Shown here: positions 8,405 to 37,964 of the stretch, piece after piece
Position numbering within the stretch: the first letter of the stretch is position 1
Layout: each line of letters starts with the position of its first letter
Source of the DNA: Octopus bimaculoides
Lineage: Eukaryota
NCBI RefSeq assembly: GCF_001194135.2
Contig: NC_068992.1
Location: forward strand, 34,462,476-34,500,556
Direction of reading: 5' to 3'
Length of the DNA stretch: 38,081 bases
Translations under genes and position numbers: made by a program
Notes under the pieces: generated by a model
The model's input: only the letters and a program-made list of their open reading frames with translations
Database searches by the model: none
What the model was told of the DNA's origin: nothing

Positions 8405-8668
8405 CTGTGAAAGGCATTACACATGATTAGTAACTGCCCAAAGATGTCATCATAGGAAGGTTTAGGTAAAGAAATAGACTATTTAACTCATATTCTGCAA
8501 ATTCAATCTCTATGTGGAACAATGAAAATACAAAGTTCTTTTCTAAACTTCAACATGTGGATTTTTACTGTTATTGTTACCAGAATGCTCCAATGATGCA
8601 ATGATGAGGCAGTTTTCTAAACACAAATCTTTCCTTCTGCTAGAATTCAAAGAATTAAAAAGGAGACA

Positions 8669-10060
8669 TTTCGAGCGGGATCATTGCCAGTGCCCCTGGA
8701 CTGGCTCATGTGCGGGCGACACATGAATCTTTCGAGCGGGATCGTTGCCAGTGCCCCTGGACTGGCTCATGTGCGGGCGACACATAATATCTTTCGTGCA
8801 AGATCGTTGCCAGTGCCCCTGGACTGGCTCTTGTGCGGGTGACACGTGAGGTTTTTTCGAGCGAGATCACTGCCGGTGCCCCTANNNNNNNNNNNNNNNN
8901 NNNNNNNNNNNNNNNNNNNNNNNNNNNNNNNNNNNNNNNNNNNNNNNNNNNNNNNNNNNNNNNNNNNNNNNNNNNNNNNNNNNNNNNNNNNNNNNNNNNN
9001 NNNNNNNNNNNNNNNNNNNNNNNNNNNNNNNNNNNNNNNNNNNNNNNNNNNNNNNNNNNNNNNNNNNNNNNNNNNNNNNNNNNNNNNNNNNNNNNNNNNN
9101 NNNNNNNNNNNNNNNNNNNNNNNNNNNNNNNNNNNNNNNNNNNNNNNNNNNNNNNNNNNNNNNNNNNNNNNNNNNNNNNNNNNNNNNNNNNNNNNNNNNN
9201 NNNNNNNNNNNNNNNNNNNNNNNNNNNNNNNNNNNNNNNNNNNNNNNNNNNNNNNNNNNNNNNNNNNNNNNNNNNNNNNNNNNNNNNNNNNNNNNNNNNN
9301 NNNNNNNNNNNNNNNNNNNNNNNNNNNNNNNNNNNNNNNNNNNNNNNNNNNNNNNNNNNNNNNNNNNNNNNNNNNNNNNNNNNNNNNNNNNNNNNNNNNN
9401 NNNNNNNNNNNNNNNNNNNNNNNNNNNNNNNNNNNNNNNNNNNNNNNNNNNNNNNNNNNNNNNNNNNNNNNNNNNNNNNNNNNNNNNNNNNNNNNNNNNN
9501 NNNNNNNNNNNNNNNNNNNNNNNNNNNNNNNNNNNNNNNNNNNNNAATCTTTCGAGCGGGATCGTTGCCAGTGCCCCTGGACTGGCTCATGTGCGGGCGA
9601 CACGTGATATCTTTCGAGCGAGACCGTTGCCAGTGCCCCTGGACTGGCTCTTGTGCGGGTGACACGTGAAATGTTTCGAGCGGGATCTTTGCCAGTGCCC
9701 ATAGACTGGCTCATGTGCGGGAGACACATGAAATGTTTCAAGCAGGATCGATGCCAGTGCCCCTGGACTGGCGCATGTGCGGGTGACACATGATATCTTT
9801 CGAGCGAGATCGTTGCTGGTGCCCCTGGACTGGCTCTTCTGCGAGTGACACATGAGGTTTTTCGAGCGGTTTCGTTGCCAGTTCCCCTGGACTGGCTCAT
9901 GTGCGGGCAACACACAAAATCCTTCGAGCGAGATCGTTGCCAGTGACCCTGGACTGGCTCTTGTGCGGGTGAAACATGAAATGTTTTGAGCGAGATCGTT
10001 GCCAGTGCCCCTGGACTGGCTCTTGTCCGGGTGGCACATAAAAGACACCATTTCGAGCGT
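8669..10060 (+). repeat. GC-rich tandem satellite/minisatellite with a ~61-63 bp unit
   Basis: Unit TTTCGAGCGAGATCGTTGCCAGTGCCCCTGGACTGGCTCTTGTGCGGGTGACACGTGAAA. Unit starts at 8670, 8731, 8793 and 8856, then about 8 more units after the gap. Runs directly into an RTE-type 3' tail. Confidence 0.95.
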
Positions 10061-10267
10061 GGCCGTTTTCGTGCGGGTGACACGTAAAAGCACCCACTAC
10101 ACACTCTGAGTGGTTGGCGTTAGGAAGGGCATCCAGCTGTAGAAACTCTGCCAAATTAGATTGGATCCTGGTGTTGGCATCCGGTTTCACCAGTCCTCAG
10201 TCAAATCGTCCAACCCATGCTAGCATGGAAGACGGACGTTAAACGATGATGATGATGATGATGATGA
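10060..10267 (+). mobile_element. RTE-LINE-type 3' tail ending in (GAT)n
   Basis: GAGTGGTTGGCGTTAGGAAGGGCATCCAGCTGTAGAAAC...CCAACCCATGCTAGCATGGAA...GTTAAACGATGATGATG is homologous to the 3' end of the RTE at 20720-20891. Confidence 0.85.
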
Positions 10268-11165
10268 TATATATATATATACACACATGNNNNNNNNNNN
10301 NNNNNNNNNNNNNNNNNNNNNNNNNNNNNNNNNNNNNNNNNNNNNNNNNNNNNNNNNNNNNNNNNNNNNNNNNNNNNNNNNNNNNNNNNNNNNNNNNNNN
10401 NNNNNNNNNNNNNNNNNNNNNNNNNNNNNNNNNNNNNNNNNNNNNNNNNNNNNNNNNNNNNNNNNNNNNNNNNNNNNNNNNNNNNNNNNNNNNNNNNNNN
10501 NNNNNNNNNNNNNNNNNNNNNNNNNNNNNNNNNNNNNNNNNNNNNNNNNNNNNNNNNNNNNNNNNNNNNNNNNNNNNNNNNNNNNNNNNNNNNNNNNNNN
10601 NNNNNNNNNNNNNNNNNNNNNNNNNNNNNNNNNNNNNNNNNNNNNNNNNNNNNNNNNNNNNNNNNNNNNNNNNNNNNNNNNNNNNNNNNNNNNNNNNNNN
10701 NNNNNNNNNNNNNNNNNNNNNNNNNNNNNNNNNNNNNNNNNNNNNNNNNNNNNNNNNNNNNNNNNNNNNNNNNNNNNNNNNNNNNNNNNNNNNNNNNNNN
10801 NNNNNNNNNNNNNNNNNNNNNNNNNNNNNNNNNNNNNNNNNNNNNNNNNNNNNNNNNNNNNNNNNNNNNNNNNNNNNNNNNNNNNNNNNNNNNNNNNNNN
10901 NNNNNNNNNNNNNNNNNNNNNNNNNNNNNNNNNNNNNNNNNNNNNNNNNNNNNNNNNNNNNNNNNNNNNNNNNNNNNNNNNNNNNNNNNNNNNNNNNNNN
11001 NNNNNNNNNNNNNNNNNNNNNNNNNNNNNNNNNNNNNNNNNNNNNNNNNNNNNNNNNNNNNNNNNNNNNNNNNNNNNNNNNNNNNNNNNNNNNNNNNNNN
11101 NNNNNNNNNNNNNNNNNNNNNNNNNNNNNNATATATACCGCCTGACTGGCCTTTGTAGGGTTTTA

Positions 11166-11467
11166 GAGCGAGATCGTTGCCAGTGCCCCTGGACTGGCTC
11201 TTGTCCGGGTGGCACATAAAAGACACCATTTCGAGCGTGGCCGTTTTCGTGCGGGTGACACGTAAAAGCACCCACTACACACTCTGAGTGGTTGGCGTTA
11301 GGAAGGGCATCCAGCTGTAGAAACTCTGCCAAATTAGATTGGATCCTGGTGTTGGCATCCGGTTTCACCAGTCCTCAGTCAAATCGTCCAACCCATGCTA
11401 GCATGGAAGACGGACGTTAAACGATGATGATGATGATGATGATGATATATATATATATACACACATG
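11166..11467 (+). repeat. Apparently identical 302-bp duplicate of 9988-10289 across an N gap (probable assembly artefact)
   Basis: Same length and, by eye, same sequence, including the microsatellite lengths. Confidence 0.8.
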
Positions 11468-17882: not shown

Positions 17883-18855
17883 TGACTTTTTGACACTGCA
17901 CTTTCTAAACTTTACTTTTGTTGCTGGTCATCTGTTCACTATAGATCTTTTTTTTTTTTACCTGTACCCATTGCTTATTTCCTAATAACTTTCTCTTTTC
18001 AATTCCCCATGTATTAGTTTCTAGTGTGATCGAGGTTAAAATTGTATCTCTTCTGTTTATTGTACATTACTTCCAGTCAGGATCCCATTGCTGTTATTCT
18101 GAATCTCTCTCCATTACTCCTTTATGAAACTCTCTGGCACAGAACCCACCTTTGCCACTCTCGTCTCTCCTCTCACTTTGCTCATCTTGATGCATATTCG
18201 TAGGCAGATATATTGGACAACTGGTGCCCAGTTCACTCTACCTTACCCTTTTGTTTGTTTACTACCTTTATCATCCAGTATCACTTTATTTGTCAGTATG
18301 CCTCACACATCATTGATCTCTGCTAAGCCTCTGTCATTGCTCTTACCATGAAGTTACATAGACTTCAAACATTTCCTGCTCTCCCACACTTATCTCAGAA
18401 TACTAAGAGCTCTTATCAATTCAACCAACAATAACACATCTTTTTCATCACTATCACTCATGCTTCTTACTCTGTAAAGAAGTGGATGCATGAGCTGACG
18501 TGAACTTGTAAGGGCTGGACTCTTTAGTCTTGTCAAGGACATGACACCCCTCTAGTGTTGGTGGCATAAAAAAACACTCAGTACATTCTGTAAAGTGATT
18601 GGTGTTAAGAATGGAATTCAAGCCAAAATGAAATGTGAATGTGATGTAGTTTCCGTTTACCTGTCTAGATGAGCAGACTCATCCAACCCATATCCAAATT
18701 CAAAACTCAAAATAGATGACACTAAGAATAAAAACAAATACTACTTGAAAGATAGTACACTACAAAATTAATTGATGACAAGCCAGAATGTATCAAATCA
18801 ATAGACATTCCAGAAATATAAAGGGCAAAAAAAGAAAGGCAAAAATGAACGCTTT

Positions 18856-20891
18856 AGATACAAATGATTACAGAGGTATCAAGTTGTTGGATCAGGTAAT
18901 GAAAGTCACAGAGAGGGTCATAACCCAACTAATTAGGGAAAGAGTCAGTCTAGAAGAGATGCAGTTTGGGTTCATGCCAGGGAAAAGCACCGCTGATGCT
19001 ATATTTCTGGTAAGACACCAGCAGGAGAAATACCTAGCCATAGATAAACCTCTGTACCTGGCTTTAATTGACATGGATAAAGCCTTTGACAGAGTCCCCT
19101 GATCCCTTATCTGGTGGCCAATGAGGGAACTAGGGATAGATGAAGGGTTAGTGAGAGCTGTGTATACCATGTACAGGGGTGCTGTCAGTAAGGTGAGGGT
19201 TGGCAACGAGTACAGTGAAGAATTCCGAGTAGGGGTAGGGGTCCACCAAGGATCAGTCCTCAGCCTCCTCTTATTCATCACAGGAATTCAAGACAGGATG
19301 CCCCTGGGAGCTCCTCTATGCTGATGACCTTGCTCTAATTACTGAGTCACTATTAGAACTAGAGGAAAAGTTTCAGATATGGAAGCAAGGATTAGAATCA
19401 AACGGCCTTAGAGTCAACCTAGCTAAAACCAAAGTCTTAATAAGTAGGAAGGCAGACAAACCACAAATCCCTTCAGGTAAATAACCCTGCTCAATCTGTA
19501 GAAAAAGGGTTGGAAGAAACTCCATAAGATGTACCCGGTGTAAACTATGGATGGATAGGAGGTGCAGCAATATCAAAGGAATGCTAAGCAGGAAAATAGA
19601 TTTTTTGTGTGTGGCAAATGCTCAGGGGCAATAAACACTGAAAATGTGCAGAAAACAGCTTCTGTTGCATACCAGGGGGAAAAACTAGAAGTAGTTGATA
19701 GATTTCATTACCAAGGTGACTAAATCAGTTGCAGGGGTGGATGCTCTGAAAGTGTAGCTGCTAGAATAAGATTAGCTTGGGCAAAGTTCAGAGAGCTCCT
19801 ACCTCTGCTGGTGACAAAGGGCCTATCACTCAGAGTAAAATACTGTATGACGCATGTGTACGAACAGCCATGCTACAAGGCAGTGAAACATGGGCCTTGA
19901 CTACTGAGGACATGCGTAAGCTTGCAAAAAATGAAGCCAGTATGCTCCGCTGGATCTGTAATGTCAGTGTGCATACATGTCAGAGTGCAAGTGGCCTGAG
20001 AGAAAAGTTGAATTTAAGAAGCATCAGATGTGTTGTGCAAGAGAGACAACTGCGCTGGTATAGTCATGTGTTGCGAATGAATGAGGACAGCTGTGTGAAA
20101 AAGTGTCACACCCTAGCAGTTGAGGGAACCTGTGGAAGAGGTAGACCCAGGAAGACATGGAATGAGGTGGTGAAGCACAATCTTCGAACATTGGGCCTTA
20201 CCGAGGCAATCACTAGTGACTGAAGCCTTTAGAAATATGCTGTGCTTGAGAAGACCCGACAAGCCAAGTGAGATCATAACTCGTGGCCTATTCCAGTGGG
20301 TGTGACCAGCCCACTTATGAGTACCCCTCATTCATTGGACAATAAACTATGCTTGCGAAGATCTGTTGAAGCAAGTGATATCAAAATCAAAATTGCTGAT
20401 GTGGCTGATGACAGTACCACCTGATTGGCACTTGTGCCTGTGGAACATTAAAAGTACCATTCAAATGTGATTGTTGCAAAAGCTGCTAATTGGCTCCCAT
20501 GCCAGTGGCACATAAAAGGCACCATTTGAGCGTGATCATTGCATGTGTCGCCTTACTGGCATATGTGCCAGTGGCATGTGAAAAACAACATTCGAGCGTG
20601 GTAATTGCTAGAGCTGCTGGACTGGTTCCAATGCAGGTAGCACGTAAAAAAACACTGTTTGACTGTAGTTGTTGCCAGAACCGCCTGACTGGCCTTCGTG
20701 CCAGTGGCACATAAAACAACCACTACACTCTCAGAGTGGTTGGTGTTAGGAAGGGCATCCAGCTGTAGAAACTTTGCCAGATCAGATTGGAACCTTGTGC
20801 AGCCTCCTGGTTTGCCAGTCCTCAGTCAAACCATCCAACTCATGCCAGCATGGAAAGCGGACATTAAACGATGACAACGATGATGATGATA
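18856..20891 (+). mobile_element. 5'-truncated RTE-clade LINE: RT pseudogene, tandemly repeated 3' UTR and (GAT)n tail
   Basis: NDYRGIKLLDQVMKVTERV..MQFGFMPGKSTADAIF..IDMDKAFDRVP..GVHQGSVLS..LYADDL..VNLAKTKV..LEVVDRFHYQGD..GSETW..RQLRWYSHVLRM..GRGRPRKTW. Multiple stops and frameshifts. Confidence 0.95.
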
Positions 20892-26174: not shown

Positions 26175-28410
26175 ATACATGTATGTATGTATGTATGTAT
26201 GTATGTATGTATGTATGTATGCATTTAGTATGTATATATGTATATCAGTATTCAGTTTTATTTCAAGATTTCTTGCCAATAGAGAAAGAGCCAGTTTCTA
26301 ACCTAGATCCAAGGCTCCTTCATTGGAATTTCAACAGCATCAACAGGGTATTTTTGTTTGTTTGTTTGTACGTATGTATGTATGTATGTATGTATGTATG
26401 TGTGCATATTTGTATGTTTTGTTTCATGTATGTATTCTCATGCATATAGTTGTATATCTAGACATACTCATATAAATGATAAACGATATCTGGAAAGTTT
26501 TACAGATTTTTACAGTTCCAGTGATGAATTAGAGCTGTAGTCCTGAAATTAACTTTCTCCTTTCTGGTTTTGAGAAGCCTAATTTATAAAGGTTGGTATT
26601 TAGGCAGTGTATTACATATCCCAGGGCTCCAATACTTACAGGTATAAACCTGAACTTGTAATCTGAATAGAGTAACTACAGATTTCTTAATAGTTCAGCA
26701 CTGGTATTCTCTTTTTCACTGATTCACTTTTTCACTGATTCACTTTTTCACTTTATGTTAATATCTGCTGGGCAGCTGATTTCCACAACTGTACACAGTT
26801 TCTCTTCTCTATCCCAAATCATTATATCAGGTCTGTTGTGCTTATATTTTATTGAGGTCTTCACAGGGACATTCCAACAGTAATCTTTCTTTATTATGAG
26901 TGGCTATGGCTTCTACCATACTGTGGGTTCTTATTTCTCTGTCCTTGAGGTTATCCTTTCGATGAATTTCATTATAGAGTTTCCTATCTACAACATCATG
27001 TCTTATTGGTAGATAACATTGTGATGACATTTTCAGGCAACTACTTATGATGTGTGTGATATCTTTGATGTTAACTCTACAAAATCTGCATCGGTTGTCA
27101 TATTTAAAGGCATTTCTTGTATGTGTATCCCTTTTGTGCATCAGGTACTTGTTTGATATTTCCTGTTCCTGGATTGCAAATGCATATCCTTAAAAGTGAG
27201 AGGTAGTAATCTAGTTATTGGCCCATGATAAACTGCTTTCACAATCGATGTTACAATCATCTCACAGCTTTCTATTGACATATCCATGCATAGTTTTCTG
27301 CACTTATAAGCTCATCCTTTCATCTGATGATACATTGCAGTAGAGTCATGTGATTTCTTTGGGCATGTAATGTATTCTAGGTTATCAGACAAAGAGTGTT
27401 GCTCTAGAAGTTGCCTTCCAAATCTTATGATGTTTTCAGTGTCATGTATGCAAACTTGGTCAAGGAATGCACCTCGACACTTGGCAGTTAAAAGATGTTG
27501 ACAAAGGGATATAATACGATGTTGCTGAAGGGATATGATGTGACATTCAAAGGCATTTTGGATTGATGCTAAGCCCCTGCCTTCTTGTTTTCATTTTAGG
27601 TAAATGTGGAAAGACGATGTGGTAGATGTTAATGTGGAAATTATGAGTGCTTGTTAGTATTTTTGGGGTTTTCACATCAATGACTCGGATTTCATCAAGA
27701 GTCCAATCAAACAGCCCAAATATTGGTATGAGTACTGGCACTGCAAACACATTGTGAACCACTGTTTTATTGAATGAAGAGAGTTCTGAGGTCCAAATTT
27801 TCTTTATTCAGCTGCAATATTCTTTAGTTACACATGTTTTGTTACAGGTGCCATTGTAAGATATATTTTCATCCACCTCTAGATACCTGTAATACTCCTC
27901 GTCAGATACATGGGAAACAGTCAAATCATTGAAGGAGATGTTACTAGTCTGGTTTATAGCTTTATCCCTTTTCACAACCATATAACAACATTCATCCTGA
28001 TCAAATTCCAACCCTACATCCTTTGAGAATGTTGTGACTATGTCAAGGCTCTTTGTCATCTCATGCATATTCTTGCATCAAGTATTAAGTCATCCACAAA
28101 GAAACAGTGTGTAATATTGGTACTTCTATTTCCCTGTGAACCAGTGAGATATCCTTCAGATTTCCTTAACATGAATGACAACATCACAGAGAGGCTGTCT
28201 CTTTGGAATATACCTTTACAATACTGTATTCTATTGGTGAAAACAGAGTTGCTCTTTGTGTTTAATTTCAAGATGGTGGCCCACGATGAAGTCAGGTCAG
28301 CTATGGCTTTGACTATTCTCACTGGAACTTTCGCGAGTTGAACGGCTTCTAGCATCCATGAGTGGGGATCAGAGATAAGGCTTTCTTGTAGTCTTGCCAC
28401 ATTGAAATTA
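26175..28410 (-). mobile_element. R4/Dong-like RLE-type non-LTR retrotransposon remnant, 5'-truncated (copy 1)
   Basis: Minus translation gives RT motifs PHSWML..GIFQRDSLS..ITHCFFVDD..FSKDVGLEF..YRYL, then VFAVPVL..DW..IDVKT, a CCHC knuckle CRFCRVNIKDITHIISSC and RLE HNRPDIMIWDREEKLCTVVEISCP. The 3' end lies in (CATA)n. Confidence 0.88.
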
Positions 28411-30868: not shown

Positions 30869-32128
30869 TTGGATCATCTCATAAATAATGCGTTTTTTTG
30901 ATGGCATGAAATAAAAGTCGGAAGGGGACAGGATAAATTACCTGCATCAACTTACTATAAAAACAGGTAGTAATTTTACCTTGTCCTCATTCTTAGTGCA
31001 AGTTTTGAAGAGTGCAGTTCGATTTCAACAGTTATTTTTTCAAAGCTATAATGGAAGTGACAAAGGAGTATATTCAGCATATTTTGCTTTATGAGTTCAA
31101 TAAAGGCAACAATGCAAGGGAAAGTGTGTGGAATATTAATGCAGAATATGGGAATCAGACAATAAGTGTAAGCCAGTGTCAATGATGGTTCCATAAAATC
31201 CAAGCTGTAGAGCCTAGAAGACTAGCCTCATCATCTAAGATCTGTAGAGCTTCACAAGGACATCCTGCAAACTCTGGTGGAACAAAATTCCATCGTAACT
31301 GTTGAGGAACTAGTAGAGAAGCTTGGATTTGGTCATTCAACCATTCATCAACACCTGTATGCCATCAGAAAAGTCAGAAAATTGGGTCAATGGGTTCCTC
31401 ACAAACTTTCCAAGTCTAATCACACATAGCGAGTCAATGTGTCCTCTTCTTTGCTGTCACGTCTCATGAATGGACCCCCTTTGGACTGAATTGTGACTGT
31501 TGACAAGAAATGCATGCTTTATAAAAATGTCAAGCACTGAAGATAGTGGGTAAGGATAGGAGAAACACCAGCACCCCAGGTTAAAGAAGGGAAGGGGTTG
31601 TTATCTATTTGGTGGGATATGAGAGGTTTAGTCTACTTTAAACTTTTATACCCCAACCAAATGATAACAAAGAAGATCTGGTGTGAGTGGCTAAAGTCAG
31701 CGCTAGAAGTAAAACAACCATCTTTGGTTTCAAGACGAAAGGTGTTCTTCTATCAGGATAATGCTTGGCCACATACAATGAGGATGACATTCCAAAATCT
31801 GGAGCAGTTTGAATGGGAAACGATGTCCCACCCATTATATCCGCTGGACATTCCTCATTCAATTATCATTTATTCCACAGTCTTCAAAATCATTTGGACA
31901 GAAAAAATATGAATTCTGTAGATGAAGTCAGAGCAGTAGTGGAGAAGTATTTTTTGTTACAGACAAGTGAATTTTGGAAGATGGGCCTTGAAAGTCTAGC
32001 AGATAGTTGGAAGAGCATTGTAGAAAATGAAGGTGAGTATATTTTAGATTTAAAAAGAAATTTATTTATCTTAACTTTGAAAAATAAAAGACGTATAAAT
32101 AAAACGCATTATTTATGGAATGACCCAA
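30869..32128 (+). mobile_element. Full-length inactive mariner of a second subfamily, inserted in a TA/TG microsatellite
   Basis: TIRs TTGGATCATCTCATAAATAATGCGTTTT (left) and AAAACGCATTATTTATGGAATGACCCAA (right), flanked by TA. Transposase from ATG at 31051: MEVTKEYIQHILLYEFNKG..WVPHKL..IVTVDKK..LSIWWDMRG..YQDNAWPH..HLFHSLQNHL..NEGEYILD, with stops and frameshifts. Confidence 0.95.
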
Positions 32129-32199
32129 TATATATATANNNNNNNNNNNNNNNNNNNNNNNNNNNNNNNNNNNNNNNNNNNNNNNNNATATATGTATAT

Positions 32200-33000
32200 A
32201 TTTATATATAGGTCAGTAAATGGTGGGGTTGTGTTAACCGCACGTGGAGAAATAATAGGAAAATAAAAAATAATAATAAGGCAGAATGCTAAACTGAAAG
32301 CATATTTTAATATAGATGTGTATAAGGAGGATTAAAAAGGATTTCTAACCAGCTTTCATTACATGGCAAATTTTCAAGAAGAGGGAGAATGAAAATGTTT
32401 TTTACAAAATAAAAATAAAAAAATAACATATAAAAAAATGATATATAAAAAAATAATATACCAATACATTATATTGTCTTTGAGCTTTTAAAGTTCAATG
32501 GTAATCCATGTAGATAATTGTTAGAAAGATTAGGATGCATGCAATTGAGAGCTGTGTTTTGTTTTAAAAATAGGGCTGAAAGTTTATGTGTTAAGCAGGA
32601 AGTGTGGTGTCAAAACAGTAAGTGTGTGTAAGGGAAGACAATTCTGTGGGTGTTATACTCTTTAGTTGGAGTTCTGGACTCTTTGTCAACTGGAAGTTTA
32701 TGTCTGTTCTTAGAGAAATAAGAAGTAAATTTATATGTATTTCATTGGATAGGCGAGAGAAGGGAATATGGTCAACGAGGGGTTTGTATGTTAAGAAGTG
32801 TTTGGAATTTCTTTATAAAAAGATCCTCCTTGTTGATTCTTTCTTGTGTAGAGATTCTGTCTTTACATTGATAGAAAGGGAATATAAGAAATTTAGGGTT
32901 TTTATTTCTGGCACAAGAGTCTGTGGCCACTGAGTGGAATTTGGCGGTGTTGTGGGAAATTTATTTGTTCTTTATGGACTGCTACTCTTCTATGCAAAGG
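32200..33000 (-). mobile_element. Penelope-like element 3' fragment (C-terminal part of the GIY-YIG endonuclease plus 3' region)
   Basis: Minus translation PLHRRVAVHKEQINFPQHRQIPLSGH/DSCARNKNPKFLIFPFYQCKDRISTQERINKEDLFIKKFQTLLN resembles PLE endonuclease C-termini (LxxRxxEH...R..KExLFIKKFxPxLN). Identified by recognition, not by alignment. Confidence 0.65.
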
Positions 33001-33002
33001 GA

Positions 33003-33330
33003 GGCGCCAAAATTGCCTGAACATGTAGGGGTAGGTGCAGGGAAAAGAGCAGCTTAAGAAGAGAGCTGTCTTCTGGAGATATGTCTGTTAAATCATGAAT
33101 GCAATGAAGAAATTCTGTCGGTCTTCTGTCTCCCAAATCTTCGTCATTGAAGAGAGTCTGAAAACAGTGCTCAGCAGAAAGAGACCTCCTATGAAGTACT
33201 TCACGCTTGAGAGATGACTAAGTCACATTTTGTGGTGTATCAGTAATCAGGTCTTTGAGTTGAATGGGCAGAAGGAATGGTGCTGAGTAAAATGTTCAGT
33301 TGCTGAATATTGCTCGTCATGAAGTAGATT
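33003..33330 (-). mobile_element. Ty3/Gypsy gag fragment (CsRn1/Kabuki-like)
   Basis: FQTLFNDEDLGDRRPTEFLHCIHDLTDISPEDSSLLKLLFSLHLPLHVQAIL matches the gag motif LGDRKPSxFLxxLxxL...LFLxxLPxxVQAIL. Confidence 0.75.
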
Positions 33331-33457
33331 GTTGCATGTTGCTCTCTGGCACTTTCTCTCTTGTGCTTGGGTTTTTGCCTATCCCCTGGCTGCTTGACTT
33401 GTGCAGTCACACACACACACCTAAAAGCAAACTTACATGCTGGCATCCTCACGAAAG

Positions 33458-33575
33458 TGGTAACCCCGGTGTGATTTAAACATGCAACCTTCTGACCTGG
33501 AGTCAGATGTGCAACAGTAGTGCATCTGACTTCACGTCAGAAGGCTGCATGTTCAAATCACATCGGGGTCACCAC
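33458..33575. pseudogene. Two CpG-decayed, CCA-tailed tRNA-Trp partial copies in inverted orientation, sharing the D-arm
   Basis: 33509-33575 (+) GTGCAACAGTAGTGCATCTGACTTCACGTCAGAAGGCTGCATGTTCAAATCACATCGGGGTCCACCA resembles tRNA-Trp positions ~10-76. 33458-33512 (-) resembles positions ~22-76 with the CCA anticodon intact. Confidence 0.85.
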
Positions 33576-33873
33576 TTTAGTGAGGAAGCTAGCTTGTAGG
33601 TCTTTTTTTAGGTGTACGTAATCATACAAGTTGAGTGGCCAAAGGATAGGTAAAAAGCCAAGCACAAGAAAGAAAATGCCAGAAAGAGAATTGTGCAGAA
33701 CCTCACTTTTTATAGTCAACCGGAGGTAATGCCACCTGTCAGCAATCCTACTGGAAGTTACAACATATTCCAGAATATTCTGTACCAAAGGAGGGAATGC
33801 AACTCTCGTTTATTTTCCTTTCTCTTCAGTAGAATCTGCCACATACTCTTTTAATTTTACACATTTCAATCAT

Positions 33874-34573
33874 TTGAGTGTGGCTAGGCATATATTTAAG
33901 TCGGTTCAGATGAAGCACGTGTTAACTCCACCATACCATCCAAGGTCAAATGGGTTAGCGGAAAGATTCGTTGAAACATTCAAGAGAACTTTAAGGAAGA
34001 CCAAACAGGAAATCCTTGAAGATACAAATATGACAAGGTTTTTGCAGGTGTATAGAATGACACCGAATCCAAGTGCAGAGTTGGGTAGGTCCCCCAGATT
34101 TGATGTTTTCCAGAAAAACTTGTTCTATTTTTGACAAATGGTTGCTGAGCAGGAAACAGAAAATAGAAAAATTTGGGAAGAAAAACGAAATTTTTTAACA
34201 CAGGTGACAAAGTGTATTTTAGAATATATAGTAATGGAAAACAGGATTGGGAACAAGGTAATATAACTGGACGTCTGGGTACTGTGATGTACATGGTAAA
34301 ATGACCAAAATATGAACACAGAAGGCATTTAAACCAATTAAAAAAATATATACCAAAAACCAAGAGTGGCGAGAAGAACCAATGGATTCATGGTATGATT
34401 TGTTTGAGGTCCCACAACCACAAGCAGAAGCAGAACCGACTCGTAGGTTGAACAGGAAGAGAAAACCTACAGAAATGATGGAAATTAATGCTAAGAGGAA
34501 AAGATGTGTCAGTTTCTCAACGAGGAAATAAAATTGATAAATTCGGGTTTTAAAGACTCTCAAAAGGGGGAAG
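33874..34573 (+). mobile_element. Ty3/Gypsy integrase C-terminal fragment, 3' region and PPT
   Basis: MKHVLTPPYHPRSNGLAERFVETFKRTLRK...GDKVYFRIY..GKQDWEQGNI..LGTVMY..HRRHLNQL. PPT AAAAGGGGGAAG at 34562-34573. Confidence 0.88.
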
Positions 34574-34853
34574 TGTTGTGTGGACGCTCCCAGGCGATAA
34601 GTAGGCTAGTTTAATACATATAAATAGCTAAATGAAAAGCGTCATGCAGAGCAACCCAGAGCTGTCAGTAGACTAGCGTTTAGTGAGTTGAGTCATCAGA
34701 AGTGAGAGTTGAGTAGTTGAGTAGAGGTCATCCGCACGTGCGATATAACAGAATGATATATCTGTCCTTCTACGTCAGCCATGCATGACGTTTTTTTAGT
34801 TCAGACTGCTCTGCTATACATCTAAGTACCCATACAAAAACAAATATTACTAC
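34574..34853 (+). mobile_element. 3' LTR of the Gypsy element
   Basis: Starts TG immediately after the PPT and has a TATAAATA box. The putative degenerate end is AATATTACTACC, so the right boundary is uncertain. Confidence 0.65.
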
Positions 34854-37660: not shown

Positions 37661-37707
37661 ATGTATGTATGTATGTATGTAGGAAAGATTGGAACAGGAG
37701 ACAAATG

Positions 37708-37825
37708 CTCAGGATGTTATTAAAACATTTATATCTTCATATCTTCTAAATATGTTTCAATGAATGCATTCATCGGAACATATATAGAAGATATGAAGAT
37801 ATAAATGTTTTAATAACATCCTGAG
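37708..37825. repeat. 118-bp near-perfect loopless palindrome
   Basis: 59-bp arms with 3 mismatches, centred on GAATG|CATTC (37766/37767). Imperfect extension of about 15 bp on each side. Confidence 0.95.
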
Positions 37826-37964
37826 TGTTTGTTTCCTTTTTCAATGTTTTCCTATTTCCTCTTAAATACGACTTACTTATCCTGGAGTCAAACCACACAC
37901 AAGCCTGATCATTGTTTCCTACAAAATTTAGCAACCCTATAATTATTCTTCTGGTTCTTTCCTG

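Follow-up and report, generated by a model that had tools for sequence, protein, structure and literature searches.

A tRNA-Trp palindrome beside the gag of a decayed Ty3/Gypsy element in Octopus bimaculoides, a probable relic of aberrant reverse transcription

A palindrome between the LTR and gag of a defective retroelement

The window analyzed here is a stretch of 38,081 nucleotides (nt) of the Octopus bimaculoides genome (assembly GCF_001194135.2, contig NC_068992.1, positions 34,462,476 to 34,500,556 of the forward strand), and all positions are counted from its first letter. Its minus strand carries the remains of what appears to be a tRNA-Trp-primed Ty3/Gypsy element, in which a large palindrome lies between the 5' long terminal repeat (LTR) and a fragment of gag. 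Read along that strand, the order is LTR, spacer, and primer-binding site (PBS); the complement of tRNA-Trp positions 58 to 10; tRNA-Trp sense 26-76 with CCA; the complement of the spacer and of the unique 5' region (U5) of the LTR; and gag from about codon 20 (Table 1). The copy is without its leader, the start of gag, and everything past gag codon ~130. A preliminary description, made from the sequence alone, had read the palindrome as a reverse-transcribed tRNA that had snapped back on itself.

Table 1. Features of the hairpin-bearing element and its immediate neighbor
Feature	Window positions	Strand	Basis
5' LTR body and 3' end of the defective element	33605..33843	-	Repeat depth, paralogues, likeness to L001
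Native arm flank: last ~80 nt of the LTR (U5) and ~30-nt spacer ending CTAAAG before the PBS	33575..33686	-	Paralogous 1474-nt contig
PBS, 18 nt, TGGTGACCCCGATGTGAT	33557..33574	-	Complementary to tRNA-Trp 59-76 including CCA
Read-through, tRNA-Trp complement 58 down to 10, 48 nt	33509..33556	-	Rfam tRNA alignment and manual alignment
Fold-back copy, tRNA-Trp sense 26-76 ending CCA	33458..33508	-	46/52 identical to the other arm
116-nt fold-back copy of spacer and U5, opposite in orientation to the native arm	33342..33457	-	87/112 identical to 33575-33686
gag fragment, DUF7041 type, 5'-truncated, decayed, ~codon 17-23 to ~codon 130	33003..33341	-	Exhaustive phmmer
Integrase C-terminal fragment of a different high-copy element	33870..34480	+	rve_3, E 5e-6

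The inverted repeat occupies 33342-33686 (345 bp), with arms of about 165 nt that are 81% identical, close to the ~350-bp fold-back with ~170-bp arms and ~80% identity that had been estimated by eye. In a blastn self-comparison, 33342-33686 matched itself inverted at 77% over 349 columns (E 1.4e-74), and a repeat search resolved the arms into an inner pair (33417-33509/33523-33615, 93 nt, 85%) and an outer pair (33342-33402/33626-33686, 61 nt, 82%). A gapped alignment of arm against arm gave 133 matches, 23 transitions, 8 transversions, and 4 gap columns, for a Kimura two-parameter (K2P) distance of 0.225, with 46/52 positions identical in the tRNA part and 87/112 in the flank. Folded as single-stranded DNA, the minus strand of the hairpin reached -115 kcal/mol, compared with -44.8 +/- 4.0 for shuffled sequences (z -17.5). 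Searching 32200-34700 against the 38-kb window with blastn returned no second copy of the palindrome.

The inversion is present in independent data. Logan contigs of 1014, 983, and 985 nt, each assembled independently from one of three studies, cross 33000-33960 with the whole palindrome included, and their depths (46.5, 41.9, and 21.1) are those of single-copy sequence. The 31-mers of the locus occurred in 13 runs from 4 studies, and every individual sampled had the copy. A misassembly was therefore ruled out, given that three assemblies and 13 runs carry the palindrome. Runs of other species contained no words of the locus, a result that gives little information on orthologues because the index detects near-identical DNA only.

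tRNA-Trp sequence in both arms

The Rfam tRNA model aligned over 33500-33571 with all 71 model positions, scoring 19 bits against a gathering score of 29 and leaving the acceptor stem unpaired. In that alignment GTGC/AACAGTA/GTGC forms the D-stem, D-loop, and D-stem, so that the center of the palindrome is the D-loop, as the preliminary description had placed it. The D-loop itself is at 33513-33519 of the read-through segment, and the flanking GTGC strands, originally GCGC, are at 33509-33512 and 33520-33523. ARAGORN called no tRNA on the palindrome because tRNA positions 1-9 are missing. CCA follows the discriminator at 33572-33574 and TGG stands at 33458-33460, so both arms encode CCA; the anticodon is kept as CCA in the left arm and reads TCA in the right. 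On the plus strand, the fold-back tRNA copy begins TGGTAACCCC. Sequence and alignment thus bear out the earlier view that each arm consists of a 3' part of tRNA-Trp with CCA and ~115 nt of flank.

The minus strand at the PBS reads GTGGTGACCCCGATGTGAT, which makes the PBS TGGTGACCCC and not TGGTGGACCCC, as first given. The window's PBS, TGGTGACCCCGATGTGAT, is one CpG transition away from GACGTGAT. When the arms are compared with tRNA-Trp, the right arm differs at 10 positions, 6 of them CpG-type transitions, and the left arm at 8, 4 of them of this type, in keeping with the preliminary description, and the CpG observed/expected ratio across the window is 0.25.

A second locus is represented by a contig of 203 nt (runs X2 and X5; window 33520-33574). 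It contains tRNA-Trp 22-76 with CCA, with 5 mismatches, and has unrelated DNA on both sides, as a 5'-truncated retro-copy that starts exactly at the fold-back point.

The right arm is native to the LTR

On the minus strand, the LTR starts with TGTGGCAG at 33843 and probably ends near ...ACACCTAAAA at ~33605. Copies within the same genome were compared at a likeness of at least 80% in two whole-run contig sets, a threshold that less similar copies would escape. The LTR-like repeat at 33705-33830 stood 13- to 19-fold above single-copy depth in these contigs, with one piece extending to 33843, and several paralogues had purine tracts directly before TGTGGCAG/TGTAGAG, as expected of 3' LTRs. A 914-nt contig carried the reverse complement of 33784-33705, then 34 nt, and then the flank, which is the order on the window's minus strand. 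A further contig, of 1474 nt, matched 33565-33615 and 33685-33729 in the same orientation, and its LTR sequence carried on past the arm.

This colinearity of LTR and flank in paralogous contigs indicates that the right arm is the native one. Its flank is, as read from those contigs, the 3' end of a ~240- to 270-bp LTR on the minus strand followed by a ~30-nt spacer, and the left arm is the inverted copy, whose outer neighbor is gag and not LTR. The window holds one LTR (~33605-33843), the 5' one, and blastn found no second LTR copy in it. A plus-strand reading of the palindrome was rejected because LTR body and gag are both minus-strand features, the former situated on the right side of the hairpin and the latter on its left side.

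A canonical paralogue and the deletion in the window copy

The canonical paralogue was assembled independently in three runs as contigs of 1474, 1473, and 1473 nt. In the 1474-nt contig, pieces of the LTR (33729-33685 and 33615-33575), the PBS, and gag (33003-33164 and 33270-33302) are colinear with the window. Next to GGGGTCACCA this contig reads ...GGAATATTCCACGTGAATATTCTCACGTCA, which on the element strand is TGGTGACCCC(T)GACGTGA and then GAATATTCACGTGGAATATTCC. The paralogue thus has a PBS of 17-18 nt followed by a leader that is not tRNA, and the read-through segment is absent. The succession of LTR, TGGTGACCCC(T)GACGTGA, and the same gag answers in the affirmative the question, raised at the outset, of whether the flank is the U5 of such an element. 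The leader of the paralogue begins, directly after the PBS, with the quasi-palindrome GAATATTC-ACGTG-GAATATTC. One extra base follows TGGTGACCCC in the paralogue and in the related locus L007 and is absent from the tRNA copy in the window.

On the gag side, the 1474-nt contig and a second paralogue (2161 nt) go past the point corresponding to 33302/33304. After an insertion of 10-12 nt they match window 33303-33324 and run on into upstream gag codons (LVANKIQSSQQQLNILLS); the translation of paralogue 1 is LVANKIQSSQQQLNILLSTIPS, and paralogue 2 goes on with similar sequence. This match implies that the gag of the window is intact back to at least codon 23 and that its junction with the inverted flank falls within 33325-33342. 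The distance from the PBS core to the point matching 33302 is 269 nt in the paralogue and 262 nt in the window, where the hairpin lies between them. The window lacks an equivalent for about 218 nt of the paralogue, which comprise what is left of the PBS, the leader, and gag from codon 1 to ~17-22. In their place it has 223 nt (33342-33564), beginning on the PBS side with 48 nt of extra tRNA complement that reach G10, continuing with the tRNA sense copy made by fold-back, and closing with spacer and U5 sequence inverted over 116 nt.

Copies with one arm are present in the same genome, and no second two-arm copy was found at the stated likeness in the two contig sets, in which no other contig covers 33450-33510. 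With the locus itself as the sole contig over this interval, a foldback or miniature inverted-repeat transposable element (MITE) family was rejected, and the idea that the hairpin might define an undescribed, recurring class of element was not borne out. The window and its paralogues are 80-88% identical. The divergence between the arms (K2P 0.225) is about the same as the distance between window and paralogues, which suggests that the arms are about as old as the insertion and fits a hairpin formed at or near the time of insertion.

The gag fragment and the lineage of the element

An exhaustive phmmer search with the open 75-codon stretch of the fragment (32993-33217) recovered 162 relatives, the best at 9.6e-13. 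Pfam gave no match on the three minus-strand gag frames, nor did a word-indexed protein search in which the gag translation kept its stops, and a search with P0026 returned only P0026 itself. The window's YFMTSNI....QQLNILLSTIPSA can be aligned to P0001 at gag residues 23-45 (YFAANNISSEHQQLQILFSAFPAS) and to LVANKIQSSQQQLNILLSTIPS of the paralogues. The gag relatives carry DUF7041, to which P0104 adds RVT_1, RT_RNaseH_2, Integrase_H2C2, and rve, the order of Ty3/Gypsy elements. By eye, relatives P0152, P0153, P0157, and P0104 have C-X2-H-X9-C-X3-C, a motif that lies beyond the end of the window's gag at codon ~130. A GPY motif is found near the end of the integrase in P0104 (...YDGPYKV...); no pol of the hairpin element remains in the window.

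The protein searches led to related families (L001-L008), and to neither the closest paralogue nor an orthologous locus. Two of the related loci compared are, to judge by their accessions, from O. sinensis and O. bimaculoides assemblies, L007 being the O. bimaculoides one; a third is from O. vulgaris, as named by its source. PBSs complementary to tRNA-Trp over 12-20 nt occur in L001 and L002 (TGGTGACCCCGA) and in L007 (TGGTGACCCC(C)GACGTGATTT), and none was seen in the examined sequence of L004 and L005. The LTR of L001, an element from another assembly, starts TGTAGCAGCC and ends ...GTGCCTATAAA; TGGTGACCCCGA follows ~17 nt on, and the leader after it is not tRNA-like. Both the start of the window's LTR and its ...CCTA(T)AAA end resemble L001. 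In L007 an unrelated leader comes after the PBS, and L003, the O. vulgaris relic, had no detectable DNA similarity to the window.

The adjoining Gypsy gag of the preliminary description is therefore a gag of the DUF7041 type, which occurs fused to Ty3/Gypsy pol and whose relatives use tRNA-Trp PBSs. The marks of the CsRn1 lineage are a tRNA-Trp PBS, a CHCC motif in gag, and GPY near the end of the integrase (PMC3630058, PMC2582038). Members would also have a pol in the order PR-RT-RNase H-IN and a pair of LTRs with a 4-bp target-site duplication. The window shares with it the tRNA-Trp PBS, and its relatives share the other two marks, CHCC in their gags and GPY in P0104. Unlike that lineage, the window copy has lost the CHCC- and GPY-bearing parts and its 3' end, so that membership rests on the relatives. 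Through these relatives, the element would be a tRNA-Trp-primed Ty3/Gypsy element with a DUF7041/CHCC-type gag like that of CsRn1.

Origin of the hairpin

The hairpin was probably made during the element's own reverse transcription, as an aberrant plus-strand strong-stop DNA that left the copy dead with a rearranged 5' end. Copying of the primer tRNA usually stops after 18 nt. Here the plus-strand strong-stop DNA (U3-R-U5-spacer-PBS) would have run past those 18 nt and gained a further 48 nt by copying the tRNA as far as G10. Its 3' end, now ...GCGC-TACCGTT-GCGC, an image of the D-arm, would have folded back on its self-complementary GCGC stem and primed its own extension, yielding tRNA sense 26-76 with CCA and then the complement of the spacer and ~80 nt of U5. 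After 116 nt of flank, the growing strand would have switched to minus-strand DNA within gag (codons 17-22) and continued as a normal plus strand, with the leader and the gag start lost. The defective DNA would then have integrated and decayed, mainly by CpG transitions, until the arms were 19% different.

A single step of this kind accounts for an inverted copy whose start is precisely where the tRNA insert ends, and for a deletion that sets in where the inverted copy stops; the second template switch is needed because the event also deleted the leader together with the first 17-22 codons of gag. In many eukaryotic tRNAs, 1-methylguanosine at position 9 (m1G9) is a hard stop for reverse transcriptases. 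The stop after G10 would fit a block at a putative m1G9. Which enzyme acted, in what order the events took place, and why copying ended at G10 are inferred from the structure of the locus. The read-through and snap-back on the GCGC D-stem that had been proposed thus find support and are refined by the G10 end, the gag deletion, and the second switch, with the mechanism still read from structure. None of the outcomes listed beforehand as speaking against a snap-back (tRNA-Trp genes naturally followed by CCA and this flank, a palindrome centered elsewhere than on the D-loop, or an inversion without read support) was encountered.

Several points weigh against a hairpin formed by the element's own reverse transcription. 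The priming stem is just 4 bp, and the enzyme must pass tRNA positions 58, 37, and 26, which are usually modified in eukaryotes. The comparison with the paralogue was read over just 30 nt next to the PBS and next to gag, and two-arm copies less than 80% alike would be missed. The gag junction (33325-33342) is blurred by decay, so that no microhomology can be demonstrated there, and the element's 3' half is gone, and with it one side of any target-site duplication. Finally, nothing in the sequence dates the fold-back relative to integration, and a template switch during host replication would leave the same sequence.

This last point is the basis of a two-step origin, in which a read-through provirus integrated and a template switch in host replication or repair later occurred at the D-stem quasi-palindrome, copying 167 nt of the opposite strand before switching back. 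Short inverted repeats are hot spots for template switches, and the final structure would be identical. Three of the four decayed CpG sites (tRNA positions 26, 51, and 64) are CA in both arms, which could hint at decay before duplication and would fit this order of events; the probability of such agreement by chance is ~0.3. Even so, the second event would have to begin exactly at the end of the tRNA insert, the rare read-through would still be required, and the arms differ by about as much (K2P 0.225) as the window does from its paralogues (80-88% identity). We consider this route unlikely, yet worth keeping in view. An origin from two separate defective elements, or LTR-PBS fragments, joined head to head is close to negligible. 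Nested and abutting transposable element pieces are common here (integrase, mariner-like, and long interspersed element [LINE] sequences), but both partners would need the same rare tRNA extension and would have to meet exactly at the D-loop, sharing one loop and its self-complementary stem. Moreover, the left arm stops within U5, where it meets sense-oriented gag of the same family, and between the arms there is neither a target-site duplication nor foreign DNA, just the 7-nt D-loop between the D-stem copies. Least credible of all are a genomic tRNA-Trp gene that was duplicated, inverted, together with its flank, and an artifact of assembly. tRNA-like sequence does stand on both strands, but a pair of tRNA genes was ruled out, as positions 1-9 are missing, CCA is encoded, and the flank is LTR sequence that adjoins a plain 18-nt PBS in the paralogues.

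A heritable or functional hairpin would be a self-priming device in which an element-encoded tRNA 3' end pairs with its own PBS, a small interfering RNA or microRNA (miRNA) gene, or the end of an undescribed class of element. In its favor are the high stability of the fold, the recurrence in the genome of tRNA-Trp 3' modules with CCA, and an alignment of the Rfam family MIR9746 over 33458-33575, the whole tRNA hairpin, at 52 bits (E 1e-9). That score is below the family's gathering score of 79, however, and the locus is single copy at a likeness of at least 80%, with a canonical paralogue that has no hairpin. The start of gag and everything after codon ~130 are lost, the arms decay freely and are 19% different, and RNA sequencing (RNA-seq) placed zero reads on 33022-33885 in three runs, each sampled at ~6% (11-13 million reads). 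We regard a function of this sort as very improbable. On balance, we read the locus as a lone fossil of aberrant reverse transcription, silent in the runs sampled, that represents no new class of element and has no apparent function today.

Repeated tRNA-Trp modules in the genome

A core of at least 31 nt (tRNA-Trp ~47-73, CCA, and CTTTAG; window 33545-33580) has ~30-50 copies in the genome. About 15 short contigs cover this module at a depth of ~2100-2200, compared with 42 for single-copy sequence. Four of the module copies share the upstream consensus TTTCTGCACTTGTCAGAACTGAGCTCAGCG, and one downstream consensus holds a second ACGTCGGGGT. These modules are not tRNA genes; they may belong to an LTR family with an extended PBS or to a short interspersed element (SINE) derived from strong-stop DNA. 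More broadly, and as a speculation to which we give little weight, copying of primer tRNA might be recurrent and heritable in this genome, the repeated module and the 203-nt locus being its possible marks. An LTR family whose PBS is extended to 30 nt or a SINE born of strong-stop DNA could underlie it, and fold-back hairpins might be a general source of hairpin RNA.

Other features of the window

The integrase fragment next to the hairpin element (Table 1) is on the opposite strand and abuts its LTR, with ~75-fold single-copy depth at 33918-33985. Its 5' truncation is near 33850-33893, at the beginning of the hairpin element's LTR; its paralogues extend upstream and the window copy does not. 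On the other side, a very high-copy repeat (32300-33000, word depth 1e4-1e6 versus 46) starts where gag stops, at ~33003. RNA-seq reads on 32950-33021 suggest that this repeat is transcribed or cotranscribed.

Farther away, open reading frames (ORFs) at 31012-32211 on the plus strand resemble, by eye, a decayed transposase of the mariner/Tc1 type (...YQDNAWPHT...HPLYPLDIP...), and ORF fragments of a LINE-type non-LTR reverse transcriptase were recognized, also by eye, at 18788-20223 (plus strand) and 26842-28400 (minus strand). SINE-like units with GATGATGATG tails are found at 10177, 11355, 14790, 20802, and 29868. A second palindrome, at 37684-37849, has 83-nt arms that are 89% complementary, no spacer, and an AT-rich composition; it is MITE-like or foldback-like in appearance, and its sequence is unrelated to the tRNA hairpin. 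A 62-bp tandem array is accompanied by 300 bp that occur on both sides of an N gap with 100% identity (8652-10101, 9984-10283, and 11162-11461), and the exact 300-bp duplicate beside the gap looks like an assembly duplication.

Significance and comparison with known systems

The locus is a germ-line record in which two known errors of reverse transcription are joined, primer-tRNA read-through and fold-back self-priming, both otherwise known from proviruses of HIV-1 (human immunodeficiency virus type 1) and from test-tube reactions. If the hairpin did arise in the element's own reverse transcription, then read-through occurs in invertebrate Ty3/Gypsy elements and its products still integrate, and the final stop of the enzyme on tRNA-Trp would be after G10, next to the usual site of m1G9. 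For annotation, this origin accounts for a tRNA-like palindrome that could be mistaken for a pair of tRNA pseudogenes, an miRNA precursor, or a new transposon.

MIR9746 (RF04095) is, like the palindrome, a long hairpin with a 3' end in ...CCA and a 5' end that is its complement, and the 52-bit match is to the tRNA part. In contrast, it is a plant (soybean) family, the match is below the 79-bit threshold, and no expression was seen here, so the likeness serves as a lead only. From its consensus ends, the family may itself be a palindrome of a tRNA 3' part; our literature search on MIR9746 found no paper.

Ohshima, Okada, and colleagues reportedly put forward a model in 1993 in which tRNA-derived SINEs with internal CCA originate from strong-stop DNA. 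As in that model, tRNA sense with CCA is joined here to the complement of U5, equivalent to minus-strand strong-stop DNA with its primer. Here, by contrast, the sequence is single copy, lacks tRNA positions 1-9 and with them a complete A box, and lies inside its parent element as half of a palindrome. A tRNA-derived SINE, which would be a multicopy, dispersed family with A and B boxes in a tRNA-related 5' head, was rejected for the locus, on its single copy and the absence of positions 1-9.

The nearest parallels are found in HIV-1. Some HIV-1 proviruses contain 7-54 nt of tRNA(Lys-3) read-through exactly at the junction of an internal deletion, which has been explained as a deferred second-strand transfer (PMC12657518). 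In those proviruses, as in the octopus element, U5 and PBS run straight on into complement of the primer tRNA (48 nt in the octopus and 7-54 nt in HIV), an internal deletion downstream of the PBS has the insert at its junction, and the LTR is kept. The octopus element differs in that its tRNA is copied no farther than the D-arm, with the fold-back and 116 nt of U5 and spacer coming next, before the junction, and in that it is a tRNA-Trp-primed Ty3/Gypsy element in an invertebrate germ line, fixed and old. Fold-back self-priming is known for HIV-1 minus-strand strong-stop DNA, which reverse transcriptase extends in vitro in a cTAR-dependent manner to a dead end (PMC6088434). There, as proposed here, strong-stop DNA has a 3'-terminal hairpin from which its own strand is extended, and the outcome is an inverted duplication. 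In the octopus element, however, the strand would be the plus strand, the hairpin would be the copied D-arm of the tRNA, and the product would have been rescued by a further template switch and integrated.

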